Below are positions 1 through 21,519 of a stretch of 64,000 bases of DNA, piece after piece. The stretch spans positions 1 to 64,000 of the forward strand of contig NW_005434498.1 of assembly GCF_000315625.1 (NCBI RefSeq), read 5' to 3'. Position 1 is the stretch's first letter. The number at the start of each line of letters is the position of its first letter. The notes beneath the pieces were generated by a model. That model saw only the letters and a list, made by a program, of their open reading frames with translations. It was not told the DNA's origin and ran no database searches. The translations under genes and the position numbers were made by a program. The DNA is from Guillardia theta CCMP2712 (Eukaryota > Protista > Cryptophyta).

Positions 1-1733
1 CATCTTACCCTTTCTCCCCTCCCCTGCACCTTTCGTCATGAACACTCGGTAGCATCCCCATTCTTTCTTGATCATCATTCGGAGATCTGCCTCCTTTCGT
101 TTCCCCCGATTGGAAGTAGCACGACTGTTGGTTGATATGTTTCAATCAGGTATCCTAGGATGTGTTTCAGCACAAATTGACTGCATCCATTGACATTGTG
201 AGAAATGATGTTGCCAGGGGCGTTGTCCTTCCTGTGCGTTTCCACCCATGCTGATTGCACTGACCTGTCGGTGGTAGTCGTGGATGGTTTGCTGCCTGCT
301 GGCAGGATTTGCTCCTCCGCCCCCGTTGCCCATTGAAGGTGAGACGAGTTCCCATCTTGCATCTTTGTTGGGCCTGGTAGCTCCTCCTCTCCCCTTGTCT
401 CCTTGTCGTTCTTCGAGATTGGCGCTGTGTGCATTGCTTGTGGCGGAGGAGGTGGCTGGAGTGGAGAGACGGGGCATGAAGCAGGAGGTGGGGGAGGGGA
501 GGACGTCAGGATGTCTACCTGTGCTGACCTGTCTTGTAGTTGCAGGACCGTCGCGGCTATGAGCTTCGTTGATCCTTGTCCTCCTTGCTCCTGCTCGTCT
601 TCCAATCTCTCCTGTAGCCGTGCATCTTCAGATGCCTGGGTCGCCTGTAGATCGCCTGCGCGTTCTTGGCCGTCTTCTCGCCTTTCCATCCGGTTAGGTA
701 TACGTTCCATGGTGAGCTCTGCAGCTTGCCATTCCTTGTAACCTGTATCTTGCGCGTGCTGTGGAGCTCTGCAGATGCGTTGTATTGTTTCTCGCGTGTG
801 CACATGTTCCATACCCCCCCCCCAGAGCCCATCCAGCAGCAGATGTCTTGTTCGCATGAGCCATTGCTGATGGGGGGGGACGCCTTGTTGCCTCCCTGTG
901 TTGAAGATATCTTGTTGTTGTGTTTTCCTTCGTGTCTTTGCGATCAGCAGCAGATGCAGCAAAACGAAAATTCCACAATTGTAGCCGTCTGTTTGTTGCA
1001 GCCCAGTTGACACACATGCCCTCCATGCCGTGTCGTCACAGTGTTCTTGTTGATCGCTAATTGCCTCGGTGATAATCGTCGCCATGAGTGATGCTAGGTC
1101 CATTCGCTGTGCGCCCCCCAATTGAAACTGTGCCTCCCTTTGGCTTCTGACTGTCCCCAGGTCTCTCTCAAGGGCCGTGCTAAGCGAGTCGACGATGTGT
1201 ATTCTTTTTGTGTTAACATCTGCCACGATTAGAATCCAATGATTGCCGTTCTCTACGCAAGGGAATAAGAATGGTTGAGCTGCCCCGGCTAGCAGTCGTT
1301 TTGCTCTCCGTGCCCTTCCCTCCTGATCTCTCAAACCCGCTACTATTCTCGGGAGAACAATGGTCCCTCTCTGCAGCCCAAATTGGTTTCTAGTTTGCTC
1401 GCTGGCATACCTCGTGCCTTGGGGCCATGCTATTTGAAATCTGTCTTCCGCTGGTTCTAAATTGCGGTTTACCTCAACGATTAATGCCTCCATAACGTCC
1501 TCAGAGAGAAATCCATCTTCTCCTGAGTTGAGCAGCGCCGCTGCTCCGTACTCTCTATTGTTTTCCCGTAGACTCCAGGGGATCTCCCCTATCAAGTCGA
1601 ATGTTTGTATTTTTCTGTTTTTTGGATTTTTTTTGTCATTCTTTTTCTCACCTTCTTGTCTCGTTCTGCTTGATTCCACCACGCCCTGGTGCCCACTGTC
1701 CCACCTGCCCTCTCCTCCTCCTCCTGCTTCCAT
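1..1733 (-). pseudogene. ORF2 N-terminus of family A: Ulp1/C48-like cysteine protease plus start of APE endonuclease, frameshifted
   Basis: Protease motifs FLFPCVENGNHWILI...VDSL and QQTDGYNCGIF. APE start ISHNVNG...VVLL, then a frameshift near 110 that removes the QE motif. Another frame resumes LRMMIKKEWGCYRVF, matching D-ORF2 LRKMIKENWACYRIF. Confidence 0.88.
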
Positions 1734-3850
1734 TAGGCGTCAAGCGGCGCGGTTGGGGAGGAGTCAAGCGACATCTCTTCCACTTCTACCGCTCTGCTCC
1801 CTGCTTCGGGTGCATCTTCCACTCGCGCGTCTTCCATCTGTATCTCACTGCTCAAAACAAGTTTCAATTCGTTTCTGTCTCCCAGCATTCCTACGAGGGA
1901 GAGCGCCGTTTCCTCCAGGAATTTATTCAAAGCAATGAAGAGAAGGTCAGTTTTCAAGGGCTTCTCCTCATTTGGTGCGAAAGCGCTGCTCTTGCGTTTC
2001 GCTACCTTCCACGTATGCTTGCCTGCAATCACCCTGACTCGTTCACGCAGTCGCTTGCTCACGGCATTCTCTGCCGCGTTGGCCCCCTTATCAGCCCACT
2101 CTTGTAGCGTGGGGAAGGATGCATTTCCTGGGCTCTCCGGAGCCATCTCTTGCACCGCGTCATCAAGATGGAGTTGAAGCTGTCCTTGCTGTTGCAGCTC
2201 GCTCCTAGTTACGTCAGCAATAGTTTCCTTAAGTTCTTCGACGACCACGTCCGTTCCCGCATCTGGGAGGTTTATTTCATTGATAATGGAACTGAGCTCG
2301 ATCTCTTTCCACACAGTTCCTTCTGCTCTGGTCCCCGTCGTTTGTGACCTGGCCTCAGGGTTAGACTGATCGCGAGTTGCCTGAGGCGACACTTGGAGGT
2401 TCAGACTGCTCGCTGTCGTTTGGATTTCAACTGTGCCTTGTCAGCAGAGGAGCTGTGTGGGGAATTCAGCCATCATCTTTCTTGCACTACTTTCACTGCG
2501 TAGCCGGAGAATGATACCAGACCCATCCCAGATCCCTGTTTCTGGATCGCATTGGAGGTGGATCCGTTGGAGGTCTCTTTCCACCTGTGGATCAAAGCAA
2601 GCGACAGCTCTCCGAATGTTTCGGATGACTTTTGCTCTGCCCGTTTCGTCACTTGCACAGATTTTTTCGATCTCATTTCGGGAGAACTTCCCTGACGGCA
2701 CAGGAGAGGAGATTTGTACCGAGTACAGCATCTCTGCTCCCGTTGCCATTGCCGTGCCCTCTTGCCGCACCGCATTCTTCATATTCTTGTGCAGCGCCGT
2801 TGCTTCCATCTGCACTGAGAACCATTTCAGTATTTTGTCATTCTCTGAGACCAGTCCCAAAGTGACTCCTGCACGATCCTTTCCATGTCGATCGAATGCT
2901 TGAAGAACGATGTCCGCTGCTTCAAGGCTCGAGCACGTTGCGATCCAGTCGACCTCTCTGTTCTGGTTGACTGTTTCTATTCCTACCGCAGCGAACACCT
3001 TCTTTGGCGGTAGGTTCCTCTTGGGGGGGAGGTTCACTGTCATTCCCGCATTTGGGATCAGATCAATGATCGCTAATCCCTGCTTCAGGCATAGCTGCCT
3101 GTAGATCTCACATATGTCACCTGTGCTCGAATCGTTGAGCATCAGGAGTTGGGCCACCTCAGCTAGGATTCCAACTCTGCCCATGTTCTCCTTCTTTGGC
3201 CGCATCTTGAACGAGATCGGTGGGTTGGCTGCTGGGTTCACTGCTAGGATCCTCCTGCCTGCCACCTTGAAGGTACCTTCTCCTTTCCAGAGTTTCTCAG
3301 CCGCCTCATTGCGGACAAAGGTGATCACTGCTGGGATCTCCGCTGCCTGCACAAGGTCAGGCTTCAAGGGAGCCTTGAAGATCAGGCTCCTGCTGTCTTG
3401 CGTCTGATCGACGATCAAGCCTTGCTCTTCAAGCTTGAGGCATAAGTTTTCCACCTGTCTGGAAAAGTATGCAGGGATCCCAAGTACCTTCATGGTAATC
3501 GTCTGCATCTGCCTTTGTCTGTCAGCTTGGACCTCTGACAGGTACCACTGCTTGACATCGTCACCCCACTGCCTGAGCCCTTTCGGATTCTCCAGTGACG
3601 AGGGTTCAGCGAAGCTGCATGTCTGACTGATGGCTTCGGCTAAGGCTTCCAAGGAAATTTCTTTTGCTTTCAGAGCTTTGCTCGTCCTGCTTTTGGGGTT
3701 CTGCCTTGCGAATTCATCCAGTCTCCGCATCAGTTCGGCTGATGACGGCATCGTTGCAGCTTCCGTCTGCCTCTTGAGGTAGCTGGAGGTACGGTACTGC
3801 ACGATCTCGTCAGGATTCACAATAGATATTGGCCACATGTTTCGAAGCAT
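1733..3850 (-). pseudogene. ORF1 of family A, interrupted by one in-frame TGA (2441-2443)
   Basis: ORFs 2441-3850 and 1733-2392 are in the same frame and align end to end with D-ORF1 (NPKSRTSKAL, FKAPLK, AEKLWKG, SPGNASFPTLQEWA, LLFIALNK). Its stop overlaps the ORF2 start as TAATG. Confidence 0.88.
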
Positions 3851-3925
3851 TCTCGATGGTTTCCCGAGCTTCCTGCGTTCCTGGCGACTCTTGCTCTACC
3901 ACGCAGGGACCCCGCTGATCTGCAT

Positions 3926-4003
3926 GCCTCAGATAAAGGGATCCTGCCTCAGATAAAGGGATCCTGCCTCAGATAAAGGGATCCTCTCAGATAAAGGGAT
4001 CCT
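3926..4003 (-). repeat. 5'-terminal tandem repeat of family A: 3 x 20 bp (GCCTCAGATAAAGGGATCCT on +) plus one 18-bp copy
   Basis: Read directly from the sequence. Confidence 0.95.
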
Positions 4004-4020
4004 CCTAAACCCTAAACCCT
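4004..4020 (-). repeat. Short telomeric tract (CCCTAAA)~2.5
   Basis: cctaaaccctaaaccct. Confidence 0.9.
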
Positions 4021-4197
4021 TCAAGCTCTCCCCACCTCCGCGCTTCCGCCGTCGGACTTTTCTGATTCAGACAATTGATCCTTGTCGCCGATCCTCATGT
4101 GACAGCGAAGGACAAGATGGAACTATGTTGTCAAGCGCAGATGGGAGCGATGTTGTATCCGTGAGGATCCGGACGTCTCGGATACTCGTACGGGTAC

Positions 4198-6354
4198 TTA
4201 GTATCCGCCCTGACATCTAAATACGGCCTCCCTTTGACGCGCATGCGCTACCGTGCGCAGTGCGTGTGTGCAGTTTACCTTAAGTAAACGTAGTCTACCT
4301 TTGTTCTCTTGGTCCTTCTTGTCCACCTTCAGCGAGCAGGCCAGCACATGCATCTCTGCGAATTTACTCAGTGCTATGAACAGGAAGCTAAGAGATCGAC
4401 GCTCTATGTCGTCGCTCTCCGCCTCCTGCTCAAGCTCAGCAGCTGCCGTTGCCCGTGGCGAGAACGCGCTGCCCCTCCTTGCCTTCTTGCTCTCTCCTTG
4501 CACGCGAGTCCAGCGCTTGCTCTGCAGCCACTTCCCCAGCTTCTCCTTGAGAACGTTGCGCCCAACTCCCTGCTCCTCTGGCATCTTCGCCCACTCTCCC
4601 AGCGACATGAACTCCAGGCTCCCCGGAGAGTAGAACGTGTCGTGGAGGTTGCCAACGGCCTTGTCCAGGACCAGCTTGATCGGCTCGCTCGTCCCTGCCT
4701 CGTTCAAAGAAGCTGCATCTTCGATGACTGCTGACAGCTCGCTGACGAGCTGCATGTCCTCTTGGCTTGACGGAGATGCTGCCTCCATTGTGATCCTCTC
4801 CAGGTCTGTAAACTCCAGCCACTCTCCCTCGCTCTCCTCCTGTCGCTGCGCTGCGTCGCTGGTGCCCCGCTGACCAGCCGCCTCAGAGTCAGGCTCCTTG
4901 TCGAAGCCGACTGCTTCGAGCTTGGTTGCTGCGCCTTCGAGATAGAAGGGCAGCTCCTTCATCATGCGTCGAGCATCCTCCGTGGAGCCGAGGAGGATGC
5001 ATAGCTTGGACCCGTTCCAGGACTTGGTGTTCAAATCCTCCTCCATGTCGATGCCTTCAACGTTGATCTCGAGCCTGTTAGCGATCTCCAACAAGACTCT
5101 CTTGACTCTTGCGATGGACGTGTTGCCGCCGTTGCACAGCCCCTCCATCTCCTTCCTCGTGAAGCGACCAGATGCCGCCGTCGACTTGATGATGATCTTG
5201 ATCTCCTTGCCGTCCTTGCCGCCTGCCTTCTTCTGCATCCTTGATGCCTTCTTCAACTTATTTCTGGACACAAAGCGATCAGCTGTCAACTCGACTGCGA
5301 GCGCCTCTCTGATCTTCGGGTCCTCGCTGAACAGAGTCAGGTGTACTCCCTCCATCGCTTCGCTCTCTCGGAAAGCTCGAAATGCTGTATCATTCGCCTC
5401 TGGGCAGCTCGAGGAGACGATCCACTCCACCTCCCTCTGTCTCCAGATGACGTTGGCCCCTACAGCGATGAAGCCTTTCTGACCTAAGCCTTTGTGGACT
5501 TGCTGTCCTGGCGCCCCAGCGACCAGCATGCCTGCCAGCGGCTGGAGTTGGACCGCTGCAAGGGACTGGCGCAGCAGCTGATAGCGATAGACGGCAGCTA
5601 TCTCAGCCGTTGTCATGCCGCCCAAGGTTAGCAGGTGAGTCAGCTCTGCCAAGCTGCCCCCTTTGCCCCAGGGTCCTCTCTTGGCTCGAATCTTGAAAGA
5701 TCGATCGTGCACGATGCTCACATGTACAGCTGTGAACTTGCGACCATCGATCGCGAAGTCCTCTCTTCCCTGCCAGAGCTTCTCCGCTTGTGCATTGCGG
5801 AGGAAGGAAACAGTCACCGGGATCTCCTCAGCACTCGCTATCTCGGGTCTATACGGGGCCTTCCACATGATTGCTTTACTCTCTTGCACTGAGTCTACGA
5901 TCAGTCCGATCTCTTCAAATTTCTTCTTCAGCTTTTCTTCATGGTTGACATACACCGAGGAGATGCCCAGGAGAGTCATGGAGATGAAGGAAGTCACCTC
6001 GTTGCCTGCTGAGGCGGTGTATGTCTCGACCTTCTCCTTCTTGGCTTCTTCAATCTGCTGCATAAACCACTCTCTGGATGCGTCACTCCATCCAGTCATC
6101 GCTTCTTGCAGAAACTCACGTCGTGCCTGCTGACATGTCGAGCGGATGGCTTCTGCGATAGCGTCGGGGGTGCATCCCTCCACAGCCTTGCAAGCCTGGG
6201 CTGTCCTGCTGTTCGGATAACGCTTCGCGAAGCTCTTCACCCTCTCGACGAGATCAGCTTCGAGGACAGAGGCATCCACAAGTCCGCTCTGCGTGTATTG
6301 GCATGATCTCCGATACAGCAGGTTGCGAACATTTTCATCATACTGAAGAACCAT
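4198..6354 (-). CDS. Retrotransposon ORF1 protein, family B (~718 aa from first ATG)
   Basis: Open frame with blocks shared with A and D ORF1: YPNSRTAQA, WKAP, EIPVTVSFLRN, AEKLWQG, SFKIR, QREVEWI, GRFTRKE, SPGSLEFMSLGEWA, FLFIALSK. Confidence 0.85.
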   Translation of the reverse strand: MVLQYDENVRNLLYRRSCQYTQSGLVDASVLEADLVERVKSFAKRYPNSRTAQACKAVEGCTPDAIAEAIRSTCQQARREFLQEAMTGWSDASREWFMQQIEEAKKEKVETYTASAGNEVTSFISMTLLGISSVYVNHEEKLKKKFEEIGLIVDSVQESKAIMWKAPYRPEIASAEEIPVTVSFLRNAQAEKLWQGREDFAIDGRKFTAVHVSIVHDRSFKIRAKRGPWGKGGSLAELTHLLTLGGMTTAEIAAVYRYQLLRQSLAAVQLQPLAGMLVAGAPGQQVHKGLGQKGFIAVGANVIWRQREVEWIVSSSCPEANDTAFRAFRESEAMEGVHLTLFSEDPKIREALAVELTADRFVSRNKLKKASRMQKKAGGKDGKEIKIIIKSTAASGRFTRKEMEGLCNGGNTSIARVKRVLLEIANRLEINVEGIDMEEDLNTKSWNGSKLCILLGSTEDARRMMKELPFYLEGAATKLEAVGFDKEPDSEAAGQRGTSDAAQRQEESEGEWLEFTDLERITMEAASPSSQEDMQLVSELSAVIEDAASLNEAGTSEPIKLVLDKAVGNLHDTFYSPGSLEFMSLGEWAKMPEEQGVGRNVLKEKLGKWLQSKRWTRVQGESKKARRGSAFSPRATAAAELEQEAESDDIERRSLSFLFIALSKFAEMHVLACSLKVDKKDQENKGRLRLLKVNCTHALRTVAHARQREAVFRCQGGY

Positions 6355-6444
6355 ACTTAGAAAGCTATTTGAAGTATACAAACCTCTTGCTTGCAGCTTC
6401 CTTGGCGCCCTGGCGGCTTCCCCTACACCTGACGAGGAGCCATG

Positions 6445-6505
6445 CTGCCGAAAATAACGGCGCCTGCCGAAAATAACGGCGCCTGCCGAAAATAACGGCG
6501 CCTGC
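6445..6505 (-). repeat. 5'-terminal tandem repeat of family B: 3.2 x 19 bp (CTGCCGAAAATAACGGCGC on +)
   Basis: Read directly from the sequence. Confidence 0.95.
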
Positions 6506-6591
6506 CCCTAAACCCTAAACCCTAAACCCTAAACCCTAAACCCTAACCCTAAACCCTAAACCCTAAACCCTAAACCCTAACCCTAACCCTA
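6506..6591 (-). repeat. Telomeric tract (CCCTAAA)n with some CCCTAA variants
   Basis: Read directly from the sequence. Confidence 0.95.
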
Positions 6592-7011
6592 TATTATATA
6601 TATTGAGTTTATTAGACTCTTAGTCAAGAGTTTCATAGCNNNNNNNNNNNNNNNNNNNNNNNNNNNNNNNNNNNNNNNNNNNNNNNNNNNNNNNNNNNNN
6701 NNNNNNNNNNNNNNNNNNNNNNNNNNNNNNNNNNNNNNNNNNNNNNNNNNNNNNNNNNNNNNGCGCTGCCTGAAATAACCGGGGCTGCCTGAATAACCGG
6801 CGCTGCCTGAAATAACCGGCGCTGCCTGAAATAACCGGCGCTGCCTGAAATAACCGGCGCTGCCTGAAATAACCGGCGCTGCCTGAAATAACCGGCGCTG
6901 CCTGAAATAACCGGCGCTGCCTGAAATAACCGGCGCTGCCTGAAATAACCGGCGCTGCCTGAAATAACCGGCGCTGCCTGAAATAACCGGCGCTGCCTGA
7001 AATAACCGGCG
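6592..7011 (-). mobile_element. Ends of a further element spanning an assembly gap (3' end 6592-6639; N gap 6640-6762; 5' repeats 6763-7011)
   Basis: 6603-6639 is identical to the 3' terminus at 7165-7201. The other side of the gap is a 19-bp tandem array joined to telomeric repeats. Confidence 0.75.
6763..7011 (-). repeat. 5'-type tandem array, >=13 x 19 bp (GCGCTGCCTGAAATAACCG on +)
   Basis: Read directly from the sequence; the left end is hidden by the gap. Confidence 0.95.
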
Positions 7012-7148
7012 CCTAAACCCTAAACCCTAAACCCTAAACCCTAAACCCTAAACCCTAAACCCTAAACCCTAAACCCTAAACCCTAAACCCTAAACCCTAA
7101 ACCCTAAACCCTAAACCCTAAACCCTAAACCCTAAACCCTAAACCCTA
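7012..7148 (-). repeat. Telomeric tract (CCCTAAA)~19
   Basis: Perfect heptamer array. Confidence 0.97.
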
Positions 7149-8330
7149 TTATTATTATTATTATTTGAGTTTATTAGACTCTTAGTCAAGAGTTTCATAG
7201 CTAAGAACTATTGCTCTTCGCTCATCTCTCGCCTAATGATCCGTCTAAAGGGGTTCCCAACCTTGGGAGGTTGGCCCATTTTCCTATAGGCCCCTTAGGC
7301 CTGGTTGCTTCCGTATTACTTGTTTTCAGTAACGATGTCCTCCGGGCCCGTTCCAATTCCGATCCCGGTCCCCTTCCTTATTTTCGCTAAGTTCCATTGC
7401 ATCTTCCTGCCCCTTCCCCCCCCAGCATGCAGTCGCCCACTGTGGCATGGCTGTATCTTCTCCTGCTGGCTAGCCCTTCTCTTCTTCCCTTCATGCAGCC
7501 CATGACCATGCGCCATGGGTGGCTTGTCCATGAGCCGCGCCTGCCCCCATCGGACTACATCGACTCTCTTACCCTTCTTGCCGTCCATAGCGTATGTTGT
7601 ACCGCCAGCAGTTGCTTGATTGCTGCTGTCTTGATGCCTTCCCATTCCGTGTCATCCACCCTTAGCCTCCTGAAATTCTCATGCCATTCCCTCTCCATGA
7701 TCGATCCTTTCACTCCAGCTATGAATGTTGCTTGTTCCACTTCATGGTCAGGTAGCAAAGCTGTGATTTCTGCTCGTAGGGGGGCATATTTCTCTTCCTT
7801 TTCCTGAAATTTCTTCTTCAGGCATTCCAGACTTGTTTGTTCGACTCCGTCATATTCCGATGTCCTTGCAAATTCGATGAGGACAATGCGTTTGATGCTT
7901 GCAAAGTAGCAGCAACCGTCTGGTATCCATTGCCCTTCTCGGTGCATTGAAGTCCCCATCGCTTCCATCACGATGCGTATTGGAGTGTCCCACCATGAAT
8001 TGACCTGTACCCTTTGTTTCCTCCAGCTCTGCTGCAGTCTTACCTTGATCTTCTTCATGACTTCGTTGTGTGCTTTTTGGATCATATCTTGGAATTGCCT
8101 ACACGCAAGCTGAACATGTCCCCAGGTTTCTTCTCGGTCTGGACAGTGAGGACAACATGGTGAGTTAGTCTTCCCCCATTGAAAGAGCTTCTTCCTCGTC
8201 GGTGCTGAGAAGGTAAACCTAAACCCTAAACTGTGCCTCCCTTTGGCTAAGCATAATCTGAACGCTCTCCCTAGTAAATCTCTTCCCACATGCATTTCGA
8301 GCATGAATTTCTCTGTCAAGGTGAGGTCTC
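7147..8330 (-). mobile_element. Family C element, 5'-truncated 3' fragment: ORF2 C-terminus (CCHC + restriction-like endonuclease, 7555-8319), 3'UTR and (TAA)n tail
   Basis: Motifs CPHCPDREETWGHVQLAC, AHNEV, IPDG...VLIEFARTSE, KEEKY and ATFIAGVKGSI align with the D-ORF2 C-terminus. The (TAA)n tail runs into TAGGGTTTAGGG. Confidence 0.92.
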
Positions 8331-8594
8331 AAGCCTGACTGTGAGTCCGACTCATGATCACTGGCAGCGGCCTCCGACTGAGCGGAGTGACCGGGTCGGA
8401 CGGTCCCGGCCCTGCAGTGCCCGGCCCCGGCGCTCCCGGTCACAGCTGAGCGCTTCTTTATAGGCTCCCGGCCCCTCCGACCGTCGCACTCCCTCCGATT
8501 CCCGGGCCTCCGGGCCACGACTCTCAAGGTACCGTACGGTCTGACTTTCGCCTCCCACTTGTATGGCCGCTGAGTCCCGGCGGGCACCGCCAAC

Positions 8595-8955
8595 CACCTG
8601 CTTGCCGTTGGCAGACAGGTTCCCCAGCACATAGCAGGCATACTTCTGTACGTCCTCGCTCCCCGGATGCTTCTCCATAGCCGCCAAGATCGCCTCGATG
8701 CCCCCTGCCTTCCTGATCTTCTCTTTGTTCGCGTCGTTTTTTCCCGCCAGGTTCCCAAGCGCCAAGCAGGCATACTCCTGCACCTCCTTGATGTCAAGAT
8801 GCTTCTCCATAGCTTCTCTTTGTTCGCGTTGTTGTCCGCCAGGTGCCCCAGCGCCACCCTGCCTTCCTGATCTTCTCACAGTTTGCATTGCTGTTTTCTG
8901 CCAGGTTCGCCAGCGCCAAGCAGGCATAATGCTGTACCGTGTCCTCGCTCATGCT
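8595..8955 (-). pseudogene. Armadillo-repeat gene fragment, frameshifted
   Basis: Repeated units VQ(H/E/K)YAC(L/Y)(A/V)L(A/G)NL(A/S)..N.ANxEKIRKAGGIEAILAAMEKH are spread over several frames. Confidence 0.75.
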
Positions 8956-9120
8956 CTTGGAGACATCAGAGGAGGAGCTGCTAGCTGGCAAGCCGATCTC
9001 CCTGGAGCTAGACAAGAGTGTTGGCAAGCTGCATGACACCTTCTGCTCGCCGGGCAACGTGGAGTTCATGACGCTCGGAGCTTGGGCAGCCACGCCGACG
9101 CTGGGAACGAAGCGGCTTGG
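8950..9120 (+). pseudogene. Short fragment of another ORF1 paralogue
   Basis: PISLELDKSVGKLHDTFCSPGNVEFMTLGAWA compared with B-ORF1 PIKLVLDKAVGNLHDTFYSPGSLEFMSLGEWA. Confidence 0.75.
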
Positions 9121-9212
9121 TGAATTCGTTGCCAGTGTAGTTCCATCTCTTGAACACAATGATCCCACAGCAGGGGCCACGGAGGCCGCAGTACCTTTGA
9201 CCTCCACCACCC

Positions 9213-10005: not shown

Positions 10006-10049
10006 GGGTTTAGGGTTTAGGGTGTAGGGTGTAGGGTTTAGGGTTTAGG
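10005..10049 (+). repeat. Telomeric tract (TTTAGGG)~6 with two TGTAGGG variants, opposite orientation to the tracts at 4-7 kb
   Basis: Read directly from the sequence. Confidence 0.95.
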
Positions 10050-10129: not shown

Positions 10130-10217
10130 ATGCTATCCCCCCCTGCAGTTTGAGGGGATCTCTGCGAGCTAGGGTGCTGAACAGGATATCTTTCTGTGCA
10201 GAAACGGTTGTTTGATC

Positions 10218-12350: not shown

Positions 12351-15300
12351 GCAAGGGGGGGAGAGGGAAACGGTTTCAAAGGAAACGCAACATGTAGATA
12401 GAACATTATATTTTTTTGATTGGATCGAGGAGATCCCATGGTCAGACAAACGAGGCGACAAGGAATTTGGCATCACTGCCCTGAACAATCGAGGAGTAAG
12501 CGGATTTTTATGCGAGAACATGATCGAAGTTACTCTCAATGAGATGAGCAAGGCTCTTCAAGGAGGAAGAGCAATACATATGGTACGCAAAGGGAGAGCT
12601 CGTGAGGACCAGCAAACGCGGAACATCATCTTCTTGCCAAGGGTAACATCCAGTCTGCGAGACGAGGCGTCCCGCTTGAGAGTCGGGAACAGATTTCACC
12701 TCAGCAGCTTGAGAGATGAGCAACACACCTTCCTGTTCCCAACTATCATCCACAGCAACCACTGGATTCTAATTGCATTAAGATATGATCGGCGATGCGC
12801 GTACATCTTGGACCCCCTCTGCGAGGACAGAACGAGCACAACGAGGGACCCACGAGGGATCGAGGGAGCGAGGAATCTTGTAACAACGGGGGAGCACGCA
12901 AAAGGAGCAAGAGAAATGGCTGAGCTGACAATCGGAGTGATCGAACACATCTTTGACGATCAGACCAATGCCCCATGGCAGATACAGTGGTGCTCAGCCT
13001 TCCAACAGGAAGATAACTTCAACTGCGGAGTGTTCGCTATCCTTCACACCTTACTGCTCTGCGAGACAAATCAAGACGGGCTAGCAACGATGGAAACGAG
13101 GACAAGACTAAGACTTCCGCAAGAATGGCTGATGCAAACCAGAACACAACTGATTGCAGCTCTCACCCATCTGGAGAAGATGGAGGAAACGGCCCAGGTA
13201 ATTCTGCGATCTCTGCCGAAGGAGGCGAGGGTGCAAGAGAGCTTGAAATCGACGACAAAGCCGGAGGAGGAGGTACAGTCGAACGCAATCCAGCGGCTGA
13301 TGACCTCGGCGACAAAGCTTGAGGAGGAGGTACAGCCAAACGCAATCCAGCGGCTGATGAACTCGACGTCAAAGCTTGAGGAGGAGGTACAGCCAAACGC
13401 AATCCAGCGGCCGATGACCGCGACGGCAAAGCCTGAGGAGAAGGTACAGCCGATCGCAATCCAGCGGCAGGCGACCACCACGAAGCCCCAACCAAGACCT
13501 TTTGGTGAGGAAATGGAGGAGAATGCACATTCAGGAGAGAAAACCTCCCAGAGAGGGAAGGAGCGGAGGGGGAAAAGGCAGGAGGAGCAAAGGGGCAATG
13601 ATTGGGCGCAGATGCATCGAAAAAGCTCAGACCCAGGTTTCCTCATCTCACAAAATGTGAATGGTTGCAATCACTTTGTTCTCAAGCACATCCTCGCATA
13701 CTTAATCCAGTCCTTCCAACCTGGGGTTGTGCTACTACAAGAGGTAAGGGTCTCGGCCCGCGACGAGAACAAATTAAGGAAGATGATCAAGGAGAACTGG
13801 GCCTGCTACAGAATCTTCCTGGGGCCTGCGAAGATCAATGCGAAGAAGGGGAAAGGAGACCTGAGGTTGGTAACGCTGGTCCACGCTTCCCTCTCGCCTT
13901 CCCCTTCCCATGCCGCTCAGGCGTGCAACAAAGAAAAGAAATATCGAAACCGAGTGTTTTCGATCAAAGTCGGAACAGGGAAAAATTCTTTTTTAGTCAC
14001 GAACCTCCATCAGGTACCGGCGGAAAATGCGATTCGAGAGCAAGGGGAACTGTGGGCAGAGCTGCTACACCTCGCTCTGGGAACGAGAGAGACGCACATC
14101 ATAGCCGGAGACTTTAATGCAGCAAGAACCAACACAACAACACCAATGCGGAGAGGATATTCCCCCTCATCTATCACCGCAAAAGCAGATGAGAGATTCG
14201 AGAAATTCCTGGCAGACCTTTCCGCACACCGTACACTCTCATATGAACAGATCAGCGGGACGGGGACGACTTTTACCTTCTCAACATGGTACAAACAAGA
14301 ATTGATAGAAGCCAAACTCGATGCAGTTCTCGCTATCCACCCCCCATCTAATGAGGACAACTTCCCCAACATCTCCCTTCAATCGTGGACGGTCGACGGC
14401 TGTGTGATAGGGGGAGCAGTTGATCACAGAGCCCTGGTGGTGCAAGTGCACACCAAGTTCACATCCGAGGAGACGCAGCTAATCCCACGAGTGGAAGTGC
14501 ATCAGATGAATTCACGACAGAAGAGGGGGGAAACCCCTAAAAGCAGATGGGTGCTGGATCGCGATACGTGGGAGGAGAAGAAGATCGAATGGGCACAACA
14601 ACTAGATGCAAACATACGAGACATGCGAGCTAAGGCGCAAGAATGTAACATTTGTGAGATGCTCGCCAACTCTCTACCACTAAAGGAGGTAAAAATCAGA
14701 AAGGGACGGAGGCGACATTCGAACAAAGAACAAATGGATTTGAAGAGATCGATCCGCAACTTGCGGACTAAACTTAGGGAAGCATCACAGCAAAGACCAG
14801 CGACTGGAGTACCTACGGAAGCTACATTACAACGAGAATTGCGAACTAAGATCGAGAGGTTCAGAACGATATGTGAAGAACGAAACAACGAAGTTTTCCA
14901 AGAGATCTGCCAACAGCAGCAAAGACGGCTTGGCACGGTAGGCAGCCGTGAATCCCAGAATGCAATGGGACGCAAGAATGATTTCACTCCCAAAGAACCG
15001 ATGATAAGTCAAGACATCAAGAAAAAACACCCTAACTCCCTTCGTTGCCACAAAGGCTTGGCTCTTAGACTGCTCGGCAAGATAGTCGACAATGCCGACG
15101 AGCTCATCAACCAACTCGAAGCAACCCTATCTAGCGAAGACACGAGGGGTGTTAGAGCATTTTGGAGTGCAAACCAGCAACTGATGATTGGGATCGAGCG
15201 AGAGGGGACAGATGACTGGCTCTTTCTATCACTGCTACCTGCAAACACAATCACGAAAGCAATTGTAGCACTAGAAGAATTGGATAAAACAACATGGGAG

Positions 15301-18300
15301 ATAGCAGGATACCGTGATCTCACGGATCATCTCCCAATGCAGAAGGTTAGAGAGCTTGAGGACGCGGACCATACACGATTCTTCTTCAGCGTCAACGCAT
15401 GCACGAAACAAGGGACCTGCTCAAAATGCTCAAACATCGGATGTATGCTCCCCTTGGCTGACTCAAGCGACGAGACCATCGGAGGGGGAGGGATGACCCC
15501 GTACTGCACAAAATGTAAGTCGTTCACAACCGTGGCCCCAAGACGGATCACACCGCCTGAGGGGGTGCAGCTTTCAAGGAGACAACAACAGGAAATCACC
15601 AGACCCCTGGCACCGGGAGAGATTGATGTCTGGCTCGCCTCGGCGCCGAGACGAAAGGCTGCAGGACTTGACCTCATTTCGAACGAAGTGCTGCGGGCGC
15701 TGCCACCAGCATGCCGAGAGGAAGTTGGCAAGTTAGTCAACGCAGCCCTAGAAGGCAAAGCTGAGGTTCTCAACAAGACAGCGAGAGTACGCCTCCTGCC
15801 AAAAAATCAATTCTGTCACATTCTCGAAAACATGCGGCCTATACGCGTCATGTCAACGCTTACTCGGCTGGTTCAGGCAATCCTGGCGCATCGTCTGAGT
15901 AAGACAGTAGAAGCAAACAACGTCCTCACAAACTTCCAGGAGGGGTTCCGTCCAGGCAGAAGCACAAGTCGGCAGGCTCATCGACTGATCTCGATCGTAG
16001 AAGAAGCAGAAGAGGCCAAAACGTCCCTAATTCTCTTGTACCTGGACTTTGCGAACTTCTTTAACAATGTGGCAATCGAGGTGGTCGAGCAGGCAATGAA
16101 CAGCCTAGGCTTCCATCCTGAGGACATTAGAACTGTGATAGCCTGCAACAGTGGAGTCGAGCTGCAAATACAAACAAACGAGTTCAACACAGGGAAAATA
16201 CCTCTAATGATCGGGCTGCCTCAAGGTGGAGCAAGTAGCCCACAACTGGCCAACTTGGTGCTATGCATCCTCTCTAGACAATTGGACAAGTGCAGCACAG
16301 GAACAACAAACAACCTGTCCTTCGCCGATGACATGGTACTCATCGCACACACGATGAAAGAAATGCGAGAATTGGTAGCAGTGGTGGATTCCTTCTGCAA
16401 ATGGTCAGGACTGCAAATCAACAATAAGAAATCAGAGATAACCAGCTTCGACTATGCTCGCAAGGGAGAGGTTCCTGGTGCGAACAAAATAACGGTCATG
16501 GGGGAACCTGTCGAAGCCCTACCGGCTACTAAACCGTTCAAATATCTCGGCTATCGCATCTCTCTGTGGAAGGAAGAAAGACGAAGAATAAAGGGCTGCC
16601 CTTTCACTTGGGGAGAACGAGCATACGTCTTTGAAAAAACCAAAGAACTGATCAACAATATCAGCTCGTCGAGTTATACTCCTGCGCAAAAATTCTACCT
16701 GGTGAAAGTTGGAATTCTCAACGTCTTTCGCTACTCCGCAGTCATGACTGGATGGACTTGGCGAGATCTACAAGAATTAGATCAACTGTGGATCAGAGCT
16801 TTTAAAAAAGCCTTAGGACTGAGCAAAAGTACAGGGAATGGTATATTCTACCTGCCAACAGAGAATGGAGGGCTGCAAGTCCCTCATCCTGCCCCAATCC
16901 TAGGGCGAGCAGCGCTACGATACATCGAACGAGAAGTGAATAGTAAGCAAGGTGGAGACATCCAAGATAGACTGATATCTAAACTCAGAAACTGGTTTGC
17001 GGAATGGGGATGCCAAACAATCATCGAGCTCCAAAAAGAAATGAATTTTCGAACTATGGAGCGTGATGTGGTGCGGGGACCCGAAGCTTTAGCAGTCTGG
17101 CTGGCGGAAAAACTAAACACGAGGATCAGCTGGGCCCACATAGAAGCAGGTCACCTACCTGGAAGCATCTCCCTCCTTCATAGGATGGAGGATATGGTGG
17201 CAAACTTGAACGACAGCGACAGACCACAAGGCTGGACGAACTTCCAAGCCTTATGGAGGCAACTCCCGAAACTCCAATTCTCCTTGCTACGCAATATACG
17301 ACCTATCGCTGACGAAGAACTGCATTTGCCAAGGAAGCTCTGGCCTTTCCCAAGGCAACGCGAGGAGGCGGAGGGGATCGTAATGCAACTGCTACAAGAA
17401 AATGTCATCTGGGTAAGCAGCGTCAACAGAGCATCAGGAACAAAGAGGAAAAGACGAGAGGTTGCCACGCAGGATAGTGCTACAACCCGAAAACGAAAGT
17501 CACACCTGCAATCAGAGGAGGACCGGGAGGAGACATCCAAAAAGCATCGGGAAGCAGCAGAAGAGAGAAGGCCACACCCAGCTCATGCAAACACAAGATC
17601 CCTCATGGCTAAACTACTAGGCAATCTGGATCAACAGGAACACCTAATCCTAAAAGGTAAGGAAAGTTTCAAAATCAAGGGCGACATAGCAATCATGGAC
17701 CGGCCCAGAAGTCACACGGGCCAAGAACAAGACATCAAAGAAGCTGAACCTTCCCTTCGCTCGGCGCCATTTGCGAGGAAAGAAGATGAAGATGGAGCCA
17801 AGAACCCAGAGAAGACAGAGATCCTACTGCAAATTGCTAAGTATATCAGCAAAACACATAACAGCTCACTCAACTCGCAAGCTTGGTGGGAACATCTGAC
17901 CACCGCCATGGCTGAAATTCGAGATAGACAACAAGGCCTTCCGCTGTCGTACGAATTTCTAGAACACTTGGGGACGCTCGCTGAAACAAAACAGTTCAGC
18001 AACTGGCCCACCCTCTATCACCCGACAATCCAGGCCGCAACCGATAGCTTGCAGGAAGACGAGGTTCGACGTGAAATAATATGGATCGACCAACAGGAAC
18101 AATACCTCAGCTACGCCGCATGCGAGTCTGGAACAATCTTGATCGGATGGAACCAAACTTGCTTCAGGAAAGAAATCCCTGACGGCTTCATGCTAGTCGG
18201 TAAGGTACCTAAAGGATCAGAAATATGCTACGCTGCAAATTTCTGGAGGACGGGCGATCGGAGCCTCAGGAAGTCACAAGACGACCTGATTGTCTACTGC

Positions 18301-19809
18301 AAGGAGTCGGAACAAGAGAGAATAATTGTCCAACTCACAGTACACCTGATCCCTGAACAGGAGGAGCTACAAGAATACCGAAGGAAGCAAAACGAAAACT
18401 ATCAAGCCTCGGCCAAACAGGAGAAGAACAGGAACCAAGTGTGGTCCGCAATCCACGGCGACATACCACGAAACAGGAAGGGTCGATCAATGTCGATAGG
18501 ATACAGCACGCAAGACAAGGAAGGAGAGCAGGAACTCGGAGCGATCAAGATACACGGAAAATGCAGCGTCATCAGAGCACATACCATCGCACTCTGCATA
18601 CTCCTACAAGCGATTTGGGAACAAAGAGGCAAACAGAAAACAATCAGGAAAATCTTCGTCCTCTTTAAATCAACCCGAATGCATCGCTTTCTTACGGACA
18701 CCCTCAGATGGTCTATCATGCAGTATGAAGACGAGCTCGTATACGACTTGGCAGGAAGACTGCAGGAATGCCTGAGCAAATTTCAGCGGGAGGGCATTGA
18801 GATCAACCTCTCTATGATCGCAGACCACACCGTAGTGCAAGAAGCTGCAGAAGAAGCCCGCAAGGGAAAATCCTCCTTCTCCTCCACGTGGGAACGGGCC
18901 CTCATCGACAACGACTTGGGATTCTGCATTGCAGACGAAGAGAACTTCAAGCCGGGGATGGATCGATTGAAAATATGGGATAAGATAATCAGAGAAGAAC
19001 AACTGGAACTGAGGAGGAAAGAAGCCCCCCTCACCTTGACGGAAACCTTTCTCCTGGAACCACAAGTGGGCAGAAGGATCCTAGGTCGAGCCTTACAGAG
19101 GTGTCGCGGATCAGTACTTCGGACAGCTATCCAAGCCATTACCTGGTCAGCACCAACGAGGAAAAAGCTGTTCCAGTGGAAGAAGACGACATCCCCCTGT
19201 TGCCCATGGTGCGAAGGCAGGGGAGAAAGCTGGGTGCATGTTCAGCTAGCCTGCAAAGAATTTGAGCTCATGATCGCGTTGGCACACAACAGAGTAATGG
19301 AGACAATCAAGGGATGTCTGACAGAGAGCTGGAAGAAGAAAAGTGTTGAACAGGAGAGTTGGTGGCAAACGCCAATCAACTCTATGACAGGGCTAGGACT
19401 GACTGCACCAGAGCACGGCAATCTCATACCAGATGGGCTCTGCTACTTCAGAGGGAGCAATCGCATTGTGCTGGTGGAGATAGCGAGAACTTCAGAGTTC
19501 ACGGGCGAGGGAAGCAGTCTGGCAAACCTGAAAGCAAAGTTTCAGGAGAAAGAACAGAAATATGCAGCACTGCGGGCAGAGATGACAAGCAGGAGCGACA
19601 ACACAGAGGTCATACAAGCCACGTTCATTGCAGGAGTGAGAGGCAGTATTATGGAGCGGGAATGGACCACAAATTTCCGGAACTTGCTCATGGACGAGGA
19701 TATGATTGACAGAGCCATGACCAAGATAGTCATCCAGCTGCTCGAAGTGCAACACATGCTGTGGACCTCAAGGAGACGAGGAGACACGACTAACAGAGAA
19801 CAAGCATGA
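12304..19809 (+). CDS. ORF2 polyprotein: Ulp1/C48-like protease - APE endonuclease - C4 Zn motif - reverse transcriptase - degenerate RNase H-like - CCHC - restriction-like endonuclease
   Basis: Protease: NHWILI/ILDPL/QQEDNFNCGVF. APE: SQNVNG, LLQEV, AGDFNA, KLDAVL, VDHRAL. RT: KAAGLD, MRPIRV, QEGFRPGRST, LDFANFF, GLPQG, FADD, GLQINNKKS, KYLG. C-terminus: CPWC..HVQLAC, AHN, IPDG..VEIARTSE, KEQKY. Confidence 0.95.
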   Translation: MTGGGREEEGGSAGSRQGGERETVSKETQHVDRTLYFFDWIEEIPWSDKRGDKEFGITALNNRGVSGFLCENMIEVTLNEMSKALQGGRAIHMVRKGRAREDQQTRNIIFLPRVTSSLRDEASRLRVGNRFHLSSLRDEQHTFLFPTIIHSNHWILIALRYDRRCAYILDPLCEDRTSTTRDPRGIEGARNLVTTGEHAKGAREMAELTIGVIEHIFDDQTNAPWQIQWCSAFQQEDNFNCGVFAILHTLLLCETNQDGLATMETRTRLRLPQEWLMQTRTQLIAALTHLEKMEETAQVILRSLPKEARVQESLKSTTKPEEEVQSNAIQRLMTSATKLEEEVQPNAIQRLMNSTSKLEEEVQPNAIQRPMTATAKPEEKVQPIAIQRQATTTKPQPRPFGEEMEENAHSGEKTSQRGKERRGKRQEEQRGNDWAQMHRKSSDPGFLISQNVNGCNHFVLKHILAYLIQSFQPGVVLLQEVRVSARDENKLRKMIKENWACYRIFLGPAKINAKKGKGDLRLVTLVHASLSPSPSHAAQACNKEKKYRNRVFSIKVGTGKNSFLVTNLHQVPAENAIREQGELWAELLHLALGTRETHIIAGDFNAARTNTTTPMRRGYSPSSITAKADERFEKFLADLSAHRTLSYEQISGTGTTFTFSTWYKQELIEAKLDAVLAIHPPSNEDNFPNISLQSWTVDGCVIGGAVDHRALVVQVHTKFTSEETQLIPRVEVHQMNSRQKRGETPKSRWVLDRDTWEEKKIEWAQQLDANIRDMRAKAQECNICEMLANSLPLKEVKIRKGRRRHSNKEQMDLKRSIRNLRTKLREASQQRPATGVPTEATLQRELRTKIERFRTICEERNNEVFQEICQQQQRRLGTVGSRESQNAMGRKNDFTPKEPMISQDIKKKHPNSLRCHKGLALRLLGKIVDNADELINQLEATLSSEDTRGVRAFWSANQQLMIGIEREGTDDWLFLSLLPANTITKAIVALEELDKTTWEIAGYRDLTDHLPMQKVRELEDADHTRFFFSVNACTKQGTCSKCSNIGCMLPLADSSDETIGGGGMTPYCTKCKSFTTVAPRRITPPEGVQLSRRQQQEITRPLAPGEIDVWLASAPRRKAAGLDLISNEVLRALPPACREEVGKLVNAALEGKAEVLNKTARVRLLPKNQFCHILENMRPIRVMSTLTRLVQAILAHRLSKTVEANNVLTNFQEGFRPGRSTSRQAHRLISIVEEAEEAKTSLILLYLDFANFFNNVAIEVVEQAMNSLGFHPEDIRTVIACNSGVELQIQTNEFNTGKIPLMIGLPQGGASSPQLANLVLCILSRQLDKCSTGTTNNLSFADDMVLIAHTMKEMRELVAVVDSFCKWSGLQINNKKSEITSFDYARKGEVPGANKITVMGEPVEALPATKPFKYLGYRISLWKEERRRIKGCPFTWGERAYVFEKTKELINNISSSSYTPAQKFYLVKVGILNVFRYSAVMTGWTWRDLQELDQLWIRAFKKALGLSKSTGNGIFYLPTENGGLQVPHPAPILGRAALRYIEREVNSKQGGDIQDRLISKLRNWFAEWGCQTIIELQKEMNFRTMERDVVRGPEALAVWLAEKLNTRISWAHIEAGHLPGSISLLHRMEDMVANLNDSDRPQGWTNFQALWRQLPKLQFSLLRNIRPIADEELHLPRKLWPFPRQREEAEGIVMQLLQENVIWVSSVNRASGTKRKRREVATQDSATTRKRKSHLQSEEDREETSKKHREAAEERRPHPAHANTRSLMAKLLGNLDQQEHLILKGKESFKIKGDIAIMDRPRSHTGQEQDIKEAEPSLRSAPFARKEDEDGAKNPEKTEILLQIAKYISKTHNSSLNSQAWWEHLTTAMAEIRDRQQGLPLSYEFLEHLGTLAETKQFSNWPTLYHPTIQAATDSLQEDEVRREIIWIDQQEQYLSYAACESGTILIGWNQTCFRKEIPDGFMLVGKVPKGSEICYAANFWRTGDRSLRKSQDDLIVYCKESEQERIIVQLTVHLIPEQEELQEYRRKQNENYQASAKQEKNRNQVWSAIHGDIPRNRKGRSMSIGYSTQDKEGEQELGAIKIHGKCSVIRAHTIALCILLQAIWEQRGKQKTIRKIFVLFKSTRMHRFLTDTLRWSIMQYEDELVYDLAGRLQECLSKFQREGIEINLSMIADHTVVQEAAEEARKGKSSFSSTWERALIDNDLGFCIADEENFKPGMDRLKIWDKIIREEQLELRRKEAPLTLTETFLLEPQVGRRILGRALQRCRGSVLRTAIQAITWSAPTRKKLFQWKKTTSPCCPWCEGRGESWVHVQLACKEFELMIALAHNRVMETIKGCLTESWKKKSVEQESWWQTPINSMTGLGLTAPEHGNLIPDGLCYFRGSNRIVLVEIARTSEFTGEGSSLANLKAKFQEKEQKYAALRAEMTSRSDNTEVIQATFIAGVRGSIMEREWTTNFRNLLMDEDMIDRAMTKIVIQLLEVQHMLWTSRRRGDTTNREQA
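13249..13486 (+). repeat. In-frame 60-bp (20-aa) tandem repeat x4 in the protease-APE linker
   Basis: (T/S/A)K(P/L)EE(E/K)VQxxAIQRxx units. Confidence 0.9.
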
Positions 19810-19896
19810 AGGATATAAGATGGTTGGAAGATGAATGGGTAAAGATCAACGAGGAAGGATCAAAAGGGAAGCCTCAAAAGCAAGCAACCAGGATCA

Positions 19897-20096
19897 GCAT
19901 GGCAGGGAAGGGGCAAGGACACAGAAGACAGATGGAAGACGAAAGGGCAACGGTCAACGAGGACAGACCGAAGGGGAAGCCTCACAGGCGAAAAACAACC
20001 AACATGGCAAGGAAGGGGCAAGGACACAGGAGACAGATGGATGACGACAGGGGAAAGGGCAACGAGGACAGACCGATGGGGAAGCTTCACAAGCGG
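19897..20096 (+). repeat. ~105-bp direct repeat x2 (plus a partial upstream copy) in the 3'UTR of element D
   Basis: GGAAGGGGCAAGGACACAG...AACGAGGACAGACCGA.GGGGAAGC occurs twice. Confidence 0.8.
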
Positions 20097-21519
20097 TGAC
20101 TTATCAAAGGGGTTCAATATATAATTGAAGATTGGTCATTCACGGGTACTAATTCTGAAACGAGGTTCCTCAATGGGGTGGGGGTTTATTGGTTGGGGTG
20201 CATAATCCCGTAGGTAGATTGTGCTCAAGGGTAGGGTGGCCTTCAACCAAGGGTATAAAAAATTGAAGGAACTTTGCTGTCACGTGAGGGGGTGGGGGTT
20301 CAGTTCTCGAAAACGAGTCTTTTTGTTGACCAACAGGAGAGTACCCTACCTCTCCCATTTGGGCGACCCTAATAATAATATTAATGCAAAGGTTGTGGAA
20401 CAGATCCGGAAGTACCCTCCCTCATGATGGTACCCACCCTACTTCCATCTGCTTTTCTTTCTGTCGCAGCCCGGAGCTCACCTGCACCGATTCTATCCTC
20501 AAAGAAGTCACTACCCCACCTACCCTGAGTCAAGACTCGGGTCCTGCTGCCAACACCCCTACTGTTCAAACCGTATCTATGCCCCTTACTTTTTATATAA
20601 GTTTTTACCCTAGCCTCAATTTTGAAAGCATAAAATGGCAGTAAACGTTTTTGCATCGCAGCCGCAGAAGCAATAAACAATATTGATCGTCTTTCTGTTT
20701 CTATTGAAACATTAAATTTCTCGCTTTTGTTTCTTGCCAAGTTGGGTCCGGGGGACGTACGGGGGCTGCACGTTCGGGACATGAAAAGACTTTATTTCAA
20801 TCGAGTACCTACCCTATGACCTGAGTAAATAATTCTAGCAGCACTTCCCCTGCGACTCTCATCAAACTCAAGGCTTGAAATCATCAGTGGACAAATTATC
20901 ATTAAAAAAAAAAATCACTGAAAGAGGAGGCGGTGTATGCTAGCGCTACTCTCTTTGTCCTGATCCTTGTTCCCCTGCTTGTCGTGCATGCTGTCGCTTG
21001 CGTGCTTGGAGTAGCGGTTTTCGCTGCCTCCTACGTTTCCTAGTCACTTTTATTGAGGCGGGTTTGTAGGCTTTATTCTCGTCCACTTCTTGTTTGCTCC
21101 GGTTTGCAAGTTTCTTTTTCACTCAGTCAATAAAGAAGTATATCCTGCAGCTTGCTAAAACACCTTTCAGCCTCGCACACTTCATTTCAATAAGGGTTGA
21201 GTGTCTTTTTCTTATATACATTTGCCCCTTCTTTTCTCATCAGGATTTTTCACTGTTATGCTGTGTAAAATATTTTCACTCTGTTGTGCTGCGAAAACTT
21301 TTAAGAGAATGTGAGAAATCCTTAGCAGAAAGTGTCGTGAGCCTGAAAAAATTCAAAAAAAGACATTCTCTGGGATAGATTCAGCGATCATCTTCTCGAA
21401 GCAGCCACACTTTACACGAATGATCCAGTCTTGCTTGTTTCAAGTTTGCATCGGCGTGTATCATGTCCAACCAACCAAACTCAGAACTGAAAACATGCAA
21501 GTTGTGCAAGCGCAAGCAG

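Follow-up and report, generated by a model that had tools for sequence, protein, structure and literature searches.

Dualen-like retrotransposons arrayed with telomere repeats at a chromosome end of Guillardia theta

Long interspersed nuclear elements (LINEs) of several families alternate with telomere repeats at the start of contig C176 of the Guillardia theta CCMP2712 assembly (669 contigs, 87.1 Mb). The stretch analysed, referred to here as the window, comprises the first 64 kb of this contig. Judged from sequence comparisons within the window and across the genome, the region is very probably a chromosome-end array of Dualen/RandI elements, a rare group of LINEs with two different endonucleases, which would integrate by target-primed reverse transcription specifically into (TTTAGGG)n. 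Two autonomous families, W1 and A, in which a first open reading frame (ORF1) precedes a long ORF2, and two short families that carry ORF1 only, B and C, are represented.

The array at the start of contig C176

The features of the array are as follows, with positions in nucleotides (nt) and protein lengths in amino acids (aa).

1–4003, minus strand: 5' part of an autonomous family-A element that extends beyond the contig start; its DNA is 87% identical to positions 1–3936 of L056; 20-bp 5' repeat at 3925–4003, broken ORF1 at 2441–3850 and 1733–2392, ORF2 N-terminus at 75–1733
4004–4020, minus strand: short telomere tract of about 2.4 TTTAGGG units between a truncated family-B end and the family-A 5' repeat, by direct reading
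4021–6505, minus strand: family-B element, ORF1 only (ORF at 4198–6381, 727 aa; 19-bp 5' repeat at 6445–6505)
6506–6591, minus strand: telomere tract of 12.7 units
6592–6639, minus strand: terminal 48 nt of a 3' end of the family-A type, which carries a (TA)n tail and is interrupted by the assembly gap
6640–6762, no strand: assembly gap with flanks from different element families
6763–7011, minus strand: family-C 19-bp 5' repeat in 13.2 copies, its unit related to that of family B; the repeat recurs at many other contig ends
7012–7148, minus strand: telomere tract of 19.6 perfect units
7149–8330, minus strand: 5'-truncated family-A-type 3' fragment (ORF2 C-terminus and 3' untranslated region, UTR) ending in (TAA)n and then TAGGG; 84–86% identity to L056 positions 9199–10729
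8951–10004, plus strand: debris of short telomeric elements, with a 164-bp multicopy fragment at 8951–9114 and a family-B-like ORF1 piece at 9213–10004
10005–10049, plus strand: telomere tract of 6.4 units, two of them TGTAGGG variants, capping the truncated family-B piece and preceding W1
10050–20097, plus strand: family-W1 autonomous element, 3'-truncated; 20-bp 5' repeat at 10050–10130, ORF1 at 10212–12350, ORF2 at 12304–19809, partial 3' UTR
19825–20095, plus strand: 105-bp repeats within the partial 3' UTR of W1

Four element 5' ends, at 4003, 6505 and 7011 on the minus strand and at 10050 on the plus strand, are built of a tandem repeat of 19–20 bp (4.1, 3.3, 13.2 and 4.1 copies, respectively), and each follows directly upon TTTAGGG on the sense strand, the adjoining tracts measuring 2.4, 12.7, 19.6 and 6.4 units. 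The initial annotation of the window, which had these 5' ends abutting telomeric tracts with the G-rich strand as sense strand, is upheld by direct reading, as is its claim that two minus-strand 3' ends run into TAGGG repeats: the ends at 6592 and at 7149, where the second is now placed, carry (TA)n or (TAA)n tails that pass into TAGGGTT(T)AGGG. The window contains 25 occurrences of a telomere 21-mer, its shuffles none. The minus-strand array (1–8330) is directed at the contig start, the orientation to be expected of a left chromosome end. The plus-strand portion (8951–20097) is an array fragment inverted with respect to the first; it points inward and ends at low-copy DNA.

Several copies in the window are damaged. 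The family-B copy at 4021–6505 lacks the usual 3' tail of its family, and the family-B-like piece at 9213–10004 is cut inside ORF1 and has an internal deletion at 9497/9498, where loose read ends fall. Around the gap at 6640–6762, the order in the sense direction (minus) is the family-C 5' repeat, the gap, and the 48 nt of family-A-type 3' end at 6592–6639. Elsewhere family C ends with a tail of the TAGCATTCTAATAAA type, unlike the end found on the other side of the gap. Because its flanks belong to different families, the gap hides at least one element junction, and its size of 123 nt is not credible; no ORF spans it.

The W1 copy, described at first as intact and as ending at 20380, is neither. 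About 15 other copies match the window only up to 20097 and then continue with about 300 nt of 3' UTR that the window lacks; in a complete W1 3' end, a motif that finishes in TTCTAGCATTCTAATAAA is followed by a (TAC)n tail and by TAGGG. The copy is thus 3'-truncated, besides lying in the inverted, interstitial array fragment. It also lacks 32 nt at 12278/12279 that are present in other genomic copies and in contigs of two public runs, so that the end of its ORF1 and the 47-nt overlap of ORF1 with ORF2 do not represent the normal state of W1. ORF1 (712 aa) and ORF2 (2501 aa) are nevertheless both open. The DNA beyond the truncation is a low-copy segment of 0.8 kb (20101–20910) shared only with C11 (14783–15516; 97% identity, two copies only, in opposite orientation relative to the arrays), which is evidence of exchange between chromosome ends. 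A reading of 20098–20380 as an element resembling a short interspersed nuclear element with a (TAA)n tail was rejected, given that only two genomic copies exist and the similarity continues to 20910.

Element families and their proteins

W1 (about 10.4 kb) and family A (about 10.7 kb) each encode ORF1 and an ORF2 of 2500–2575 aa. W1 is present in about 20 copies that are 97–100% alike; family A accounts for about 30 reverse transcriptase (RT) matches with 52–59% protein identity to W1, and in its full-length relatives L056 and L074, ORF2 is 45% identical to that of W1. Families B and C measure about 2.7–2.9 kb and contain ORF1 only. A complete family-B copy on C15, of about 2.9 kb, has its own 5' repeat, ORF1, a 3' UTR and a (TAA)n tail, and family-B ORF1 is 29% identical to that of W1 (664 aa, E 1e-83); family C, whose repeat unit relates it to B, measures about 2.7 kb on C4 by coordinates. 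The short families share the 3'-terminal motif TCTAATAAA followed by a (TAA)n or (TAC)n tail. The 3' motif TAGCATTCTAATAAA occurs at 154 genomic sites, as against about 20 W1 copies with RT, from which it follows that ORF1-only elements outnumber autonomous ones. The sharing of the W1 3' motif suggests that autonomous elements may mobilise the ORF1-only ones in trans.

The 5' repeats vary even within one array. At C15:1046580–1047173 (L066), the 5' array shifts from the family-B unit to family-C units and then to a TTATTCCAGG variant, suggesting that the repeats evolve through the turnover of units inside one array. Folding of ten family-A 3' ends with RNAalifold gave no covariation support (term +0.83), the sequences being too alike, and a metagenome scan for the family-A 3' junction returned only the contig already known.

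The domains of ORF2, all on the plus strand, are as follows.

12691–13083: Ulp1/C48-like cysteine protease (about aa 130–260), with conserved His, Asp, Gln and Cys positions
13648–14433: APE-type endonuclease (about aa 449–710); Pfam PF03372 over aa 449–660, E 9.5e-8, 32.5 bits against a cut-off of 24.5
15391–15558: CxxC...CxxC motif upstream of RT, its four Cys conserved across 11 relatives
15799–16560: RT with FADD motif (aa 1166–1419); Pfam PF00078, E 1e-34
18451–18828: RNase H-like domain with catalytic positions replaced, aligning to relatives that pass Pfam PF00075
19195–19713: CCHC zinc knuckle (C2300, C2303, H2312, C2317) and restriction-like endonuclease (RLE; P2376-D2377, E2392, K2416)

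This is the domain order of Dualen, with the APE-type nuclease N-terminal to RT and the CCHC motif plus PD-(D/E)xK nuclease C-terminal to it in a single ORF. The protease of the window copy lies below threshold (Pfam PF02902, 18.2 bits against 20.7; PDB 6dg4, E 0.01); in the relatives P0021 and P0038, C48 exceeds the Pfam cut-off, as expected of Dualen. The APE-type domain retains the N, E and GDFN motifs and gives weak matches to solved LINE endonucleases. In an alignment of 19 sequences of the C-terminal block, C, C, H, C, PD, R, K and Y are invariant, and a profile of this block matches the CCHC and RLE part of the solved R2 proteins 9nl3 and 9dou (E 3.6e-23). The CxxC...CxxC motif is possibly a zinc ribbon and may serve in DNA binding. 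An exhaustive HMMER search recovered many metagenomic relatives of ORF2, 2000–3900 aa in length, in which the APE, RT, CCHC and C-terminal blocks are co-linear; the database proteins closest to it are metagenomic ORFs that share its order of domains, and the four relatives scanned contain between them Pfam C48, APE, RT, RNase H and zf-RVT. In addition, a 57-bp (19-codon) repeat in 3.9 copies at 13249–13468, between protease and APE, encodes a linker rich in K, E and Q.

The RNase H-like domain departs from this conservation. Of the DEDD set, W1 and family A have both lost the glutamate (now H or N) and the second aspartate (now K or Q). In place of the first aspartate stands H in W1 but E in family A, and the last is E. 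With at least two of the four catalytic positions non-acidic, the domain is probably inactive in both families, unlike the RT (FADD), the two nucleases and the protease, whose motifs are kept. The initial claim of protease, APE, RT, RNase H-like domain and RLE in one ORF of an intact copy thus stands for the domain set, by Pfam and by the R2 profile match; the RNase H catalytic residues are lost, and the copy is truncated.

A separate ORF1 is conserved in at least three families, and those of W1, A and B share many invariant residues. It bears out the earlier view of these as Dualen-like elements with a large ORF1 of their own. In W1 and family A, an ORF1 of 712–716 aa precedes ORF2, which departs from the single-ORF description of known Dualen, a character that does not define the group. 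The W1 copies on C15, C64, C231 and C160 have ORF1 (716 codons from stop to stop) in frame with ORF2, a single TAA between them, and the ORF2 ATG 9 nt after that TAA; ORF2 is fully open (about 2503 codons) on C15 and C64 and broken on C231 and C160. In family A, the stop and start overlap as TAATG in three diverged copies. The two-ORF organisation is therefore real, and ORF2 is likely to be translated by termination-reinitiation, through UAAUG in family A and through a stop followed by an in-frame ATG 9 nt later in W1.

A fragment of ORF1 is annotated as GUITHDRAFT_111706 of Guillardia theta CCMP2712 (93% identity). ORF1 has no Pfam match, no language-model neighbours and no detected similarity to the single-ORF relatives, its homologues being itself and near-self sequences. 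An AlphaFold model from a 6-sequence alignment has a mean pLDDT of 46, and Foldseek returned no match below E 0.001 for it; scattered RNA recognition motif (RRM) domains at E ~0.1 are a lead, not a finding. A likeness of aa 366–414 to the RNase H region of relatives was discarded (E 0.4–7, the matches not being independent).

Telomere flanks across the genome

A four-unit telomere pattern matches the genome 1775 times and the control 0 times, as CCCTAAA at contig starts and TTTAGGG at contig ends. This polarity identifies TTTAGGG as the real telomere repeat, with the G-strand running 5' to 3' toward the tip. C21 contains a match to the telomerase RNA-binding domain (RBD; 51 bits against a cut-off of 25). 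Against this background, telomere units lie directly upstream of 20 of 22 distinct W1 5' ends, whose 5' repeat ranges from 1 to 42 units, and the junction reads TTTAGG and then AGG, with which the repeat begins, in 15 of those 20. On the 3' side, TAGGGTT is found within 33 nt, after the (TAA)n or (TAC)n tail, at 64 of 73 TAGCATTCTAATAAA ends (the first 73 of the 154 sites), and it follows 18 of 30 family-A-type ends. The 3' junction is uniform, consisting of the tail and then TAGGGTTTAGGG. Copies succeed one another head to tail; their sense strand coincides with the G-strand, so that their 3' ends face the chromosome tip. All 56 RT matches are near contig ends and about 52 face outward (minus at low coordinates, plus at high coordinates, or on small contigs), position relative to the contig end being partly inferred from size-ordered contig numbering; the inward copies, namely that of the window and those on C86, C154 and perhaps C321, are still near contig ends. 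The elements are thus inserted in the telomere repeat at a fixed position and in a fixed orientation, as SART/TRAS elements are. Insertion into telomere tracts, proposed at first for the window, holds beyond it, and the contrary outcome, a majority of genomic copies without telomeric flanks, was not seen.

Independent evidence comes from four contigs in three assemblies made from other samples. L070 and L071, contigs from the European Nucleotide Archive (ENA), contain complete W1 elements, from the 5' repeat to (TAC)n and more than 15 telomere units. L056, from a Joint Genome Institute (JGI) sample, has two 20-bp repeat units at its start, and its far end reads (TAA)n, TAGGGTTTAGGGTTTAGG, AG. 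In L074, also from JGI, three telomere units follow a family-B 3' end and lead, through a single repeat unit, to a complete family-A element, beyond which lies a long telomere tract. These two JGI contigs, each from its own sample, are 84–87% identical to family A of the genome. The array structure is therefore not an artefact of this assembly, and it persists in relatives as diverged as these.

Targeting is strong, not absolute, and several observations weigh against the reading of telomere-specific Dualen elements. Telomere flanks were missing in the pattern search from 12 of the 30 family-A-type 3' ends, and five of six that were inspected lie at internal sites; likewise, telomere repeats are missing from 2 of the 22 W1 5' ends. 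On C160, a truncated W1 abuts a partial family-B 5' repeat unit without intervening telomere units, perhaps through a target deletion. The 5' junction may be constant by inheritance instead of being remade at each insertion. The inverted plus-strand array of the window could be a recent rearrangement or a local misassembly. Coverage of 8000–13999 is patchy in a raw RNA-seq run, where 1116 of 1175 reads fit only in part, and the contigs that cover the same interval come from other runs of uncertain kind, their RNA status being guessed. Finally, the Dualen placement is drawn from domain architecture rather than from an RT tree with reference sequences, and is to that extent provisional.

As a rival explanation, LINEs of no sequence specificity might accumulate in subtelomeres through tolerance and through recombination between chromosome ends. 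Such ends do exchange sequence, as the segment common to the window and C11 illustrates, many copies are 97–100% identical, and some 3' fragments lie at internal sites. This explanation is nevertheless improbable: the same junction register recurs at dozens of 3' ends that differ in tail length and family, and again in diverged relatives from other samples, and no RT-bearing copy lies deep within a large contig. Moreover, one of the internal insertions inspected, an off-target fragment of about 115 nt, lies just after a telomere-like TTTAGGGTTTAG motif in the usual orientation, where an AGATC duplication appears to flank it. Were the array instead a chimera of a draft, gapped assembly, it would have little bearing on real chromosome ends. 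The gap between parts of different families and the inverted fragment would fit, and none of the reads or contigs listed (reads on window positions 8000–13999) bridges the junctions at 8330, 10004 and 20097. A chimera has a still smaller chance of being right, as the succession of repeat, ORF1, ORF2, tail, telomere repeats and next element recurs at more than 20 contig ends, and the unit structure is also found in the four contigs assembled independently.

The last alternative is end attachment of the Drosophila type, in which reverse transcription onto a free chromosome end is primed by the terminal 3' overhang. One-orientation arrays at chromosome ends, an ORF1-only partner beside autonomous elements, and junctions without telomere units such as that on C160 are what it would lead one to expect. 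Priming by the G-strand overhang, however, would leave elements with their antisense strand on the G-strand and a proximal 3' end, the opposite of what is seen, and the orientation thus excludes terminal-overhang priming. Telomere repeats also flank the elements on both sides in a fixed register, and an internal insertion seems to carry a target-site duplication. End attachment is accordingly the least probable of the rivals, and insertion into (TTTAGGG)n by Dualen-like elements remains by far the best account.

Three sets of observations are recorded beside these. Two W1 5' junctions (L003 and L013) are mosaic, with partial 5' repeat units alternating with telomere units, for example TTTAGG, AGACCGCT and AGGGTTTAGG, and may reflect template switching or repeated rounds of cutting while the 5' end was being joined. 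A few 3' ends, at C6:355785–356086 (L023), C19:810359, C31:424005 and C3:943700, lie hundreds of kb from contig ends; they carry telomere units where shown, a W1 5' end follows on C6, and they are either relics of interstitial arrays or contig joins. Between the opposed arrays of the window, about 620 nt of single-copy DNA (8331–8950), to which spliced contigs map in one public run, are possibly a transcribed gene remnant. A contig of one public run skips 62 nt bounded by GT..AG at 8838–8899 within this stretch, and a second 62-nt GT..AG skip, at 8211–8272, falls inside the family-A 3' fragment.

Proposed insertion mechanism, known systems and meaning

Since the elements have their sense strand on the G-strand and their 3' end on the distal side, target-primed reverse transcription must take the nicked C-strand as its primer. 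From the uniform 3' junction, an element nuclease would nick this strand at one constant site, either CCC^TA or CCCTA^A; the freed 3' end would then pair with the UA-rich RNA tail, which starts with UA, and prime cDNA synthesis. The mostly constant 5' junction points to a subsequent cut of the G-strand near TTTAGG^G, or else to AGG microhomology, and the two nucleases may split the C-strand and G-strand cuts between them. ORF1-only elements would use the same machinery in trans through their shared 3' end. Erosion from the chromosome tip would reach the distal 3' end first and shorten elements from that side; telomerase would then cap them again, and new copies would insert into the fresh repeats. 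Copies cut at the 3' side, followed by telomere units and then by a new element, are found in the window (4004–4020 and 10005–10049), in L046 and on C15 (a family-B copy cut inside ORF1), and this fits a cycle of erosion or breakage, telomerase capping and re-insertion.

The coexistence of APE and RLE is unique to the Dualen clade (PMC9977147), a group that sits between RLE-bearing and APE-bearing LINEs (PMC4640811). In cryptophytes, Dualen-1_GCr has the same set of C48, APE-like, RT, RNase H, CCHC and RLE domains (PMC5029228), and the architecture itself is therefore not new. That element encodes one protein of 5287 aa with a SET domain, whereas the G. theta elements place a separate 712-aa ORF1 before ORF2. 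The active Dualen of Chlamydomonas inserts at dispersed sites with very long target duplications (PMC9977147), in contrast to the telomere repeat used in G. theta, whose elements further differ from described Dualen in their ORF1-only partners and in the lost RNase H catalytic residues. By RepeatMasker-level counts, Dualen has expanded in all cryptophytes except G. theta (PMC12747079). The idea of a new telomere-specific family, as first put forward, thus keeps its telomere targeting and gives up the dual-nuclease architecture, already reported in cryptophytes without a tie to telomeres (PMC5029228). In the literature searched, neither a telomere-specific Dualen nor such arrays were found, an existing Repbase entry remaining possible, and no target specificity was found for the Dualen group.

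Telomere-specific LINEs occur in insects (R1 clade, with APE) and in fungi (CRE-like, with RLE), and also in Giardia and Chlorella. Among them, MoTeR and FoTeR are CRE-like, with RLE only and no known APE. The SART tail abuts the TTAGG strand, as the tails in G. theta abut TAGGG, and SART1 reportedly has a UAAUG stop/start overlap like that of family A. In Drosophila, elements are added to the chromosome end with the 3' end proximal, and HeT-A, which is known to encode only Gag, is more numerous than the autonomous elements with RT, much as ORF1-only elements are in G. theta.

A parallel in target choice is offered by SART1 and TRAS1 of Bombyx mori (R1 clade), which likewise hold a fixed position and orientation in a telomerase-type repeat that persists, and SART1 has two ORFs, like W1 and family A (PMC7265360). 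These elements carry a single APE, no RLE or C48, and a poly(A) tail, and belong to an unrelated clade from a different kingdom; the G. theta elements, in place of this APE-only, poly(A) form, have RLE and C48, (TAA)n or (TAC)n tails and a variable 5' repeat of 19–20 bp. MoTeR and FoTeR of fungi are also telomere-embedded non-LTR (long terminal repeat) elements with RLE, variable 5' tandem repeats and asymmetric junctions, and their truncated copies keep telomere repeats on the intact side, as in G. theta; they differ in having a single RT ORF and C-rich flanking repeats (TAACCC) at both ends, opposite to the G-strand sense seen here (PMC12857005). HeT-A, TART and TAHRE of Drosophila similarly form a mixed chromosome-end community in head-to-tail arrays, in the absence of telomerase repeats (PMC7265360). 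In G. theta, by contrast, repeats lie between elements, a telomerase RBD match exists and the 3' end is distal, so that neither the proximal 3' end nor the repeat-free junctions of the HeT-A/TART type are found.

More tentatively, and with appreciable doubt, G. theta chromosome ends may be built jointly by telomerase and a retrotransposon community of two autonomous Dualen families and their ORF1-only partners, the nucleases dividing the C-strand nick and the G-strand cut at TTTAGG^G. If so, this would be the first dual-nuclease LINE whose purpose is readable from a defined target, and a third independent origin of a telomere community like HeT-A/TART or SART/TRAS, outside animals and fungi. 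The elements described here would add a lineage of the Dualen group to the telomere-specific LINEs. Since the target is a 7-bp repeat and the junctions are fixed on both sides, the role of each nuclease is testable with short oligonucleotides, and G. theta is a cultured organism with a reference genome. With ORF1-only partners, hypervariable 5' repeats and eroded, re-capped copies, it would provide a protist model of how telomerase and retrotransposons share the chromosome end.

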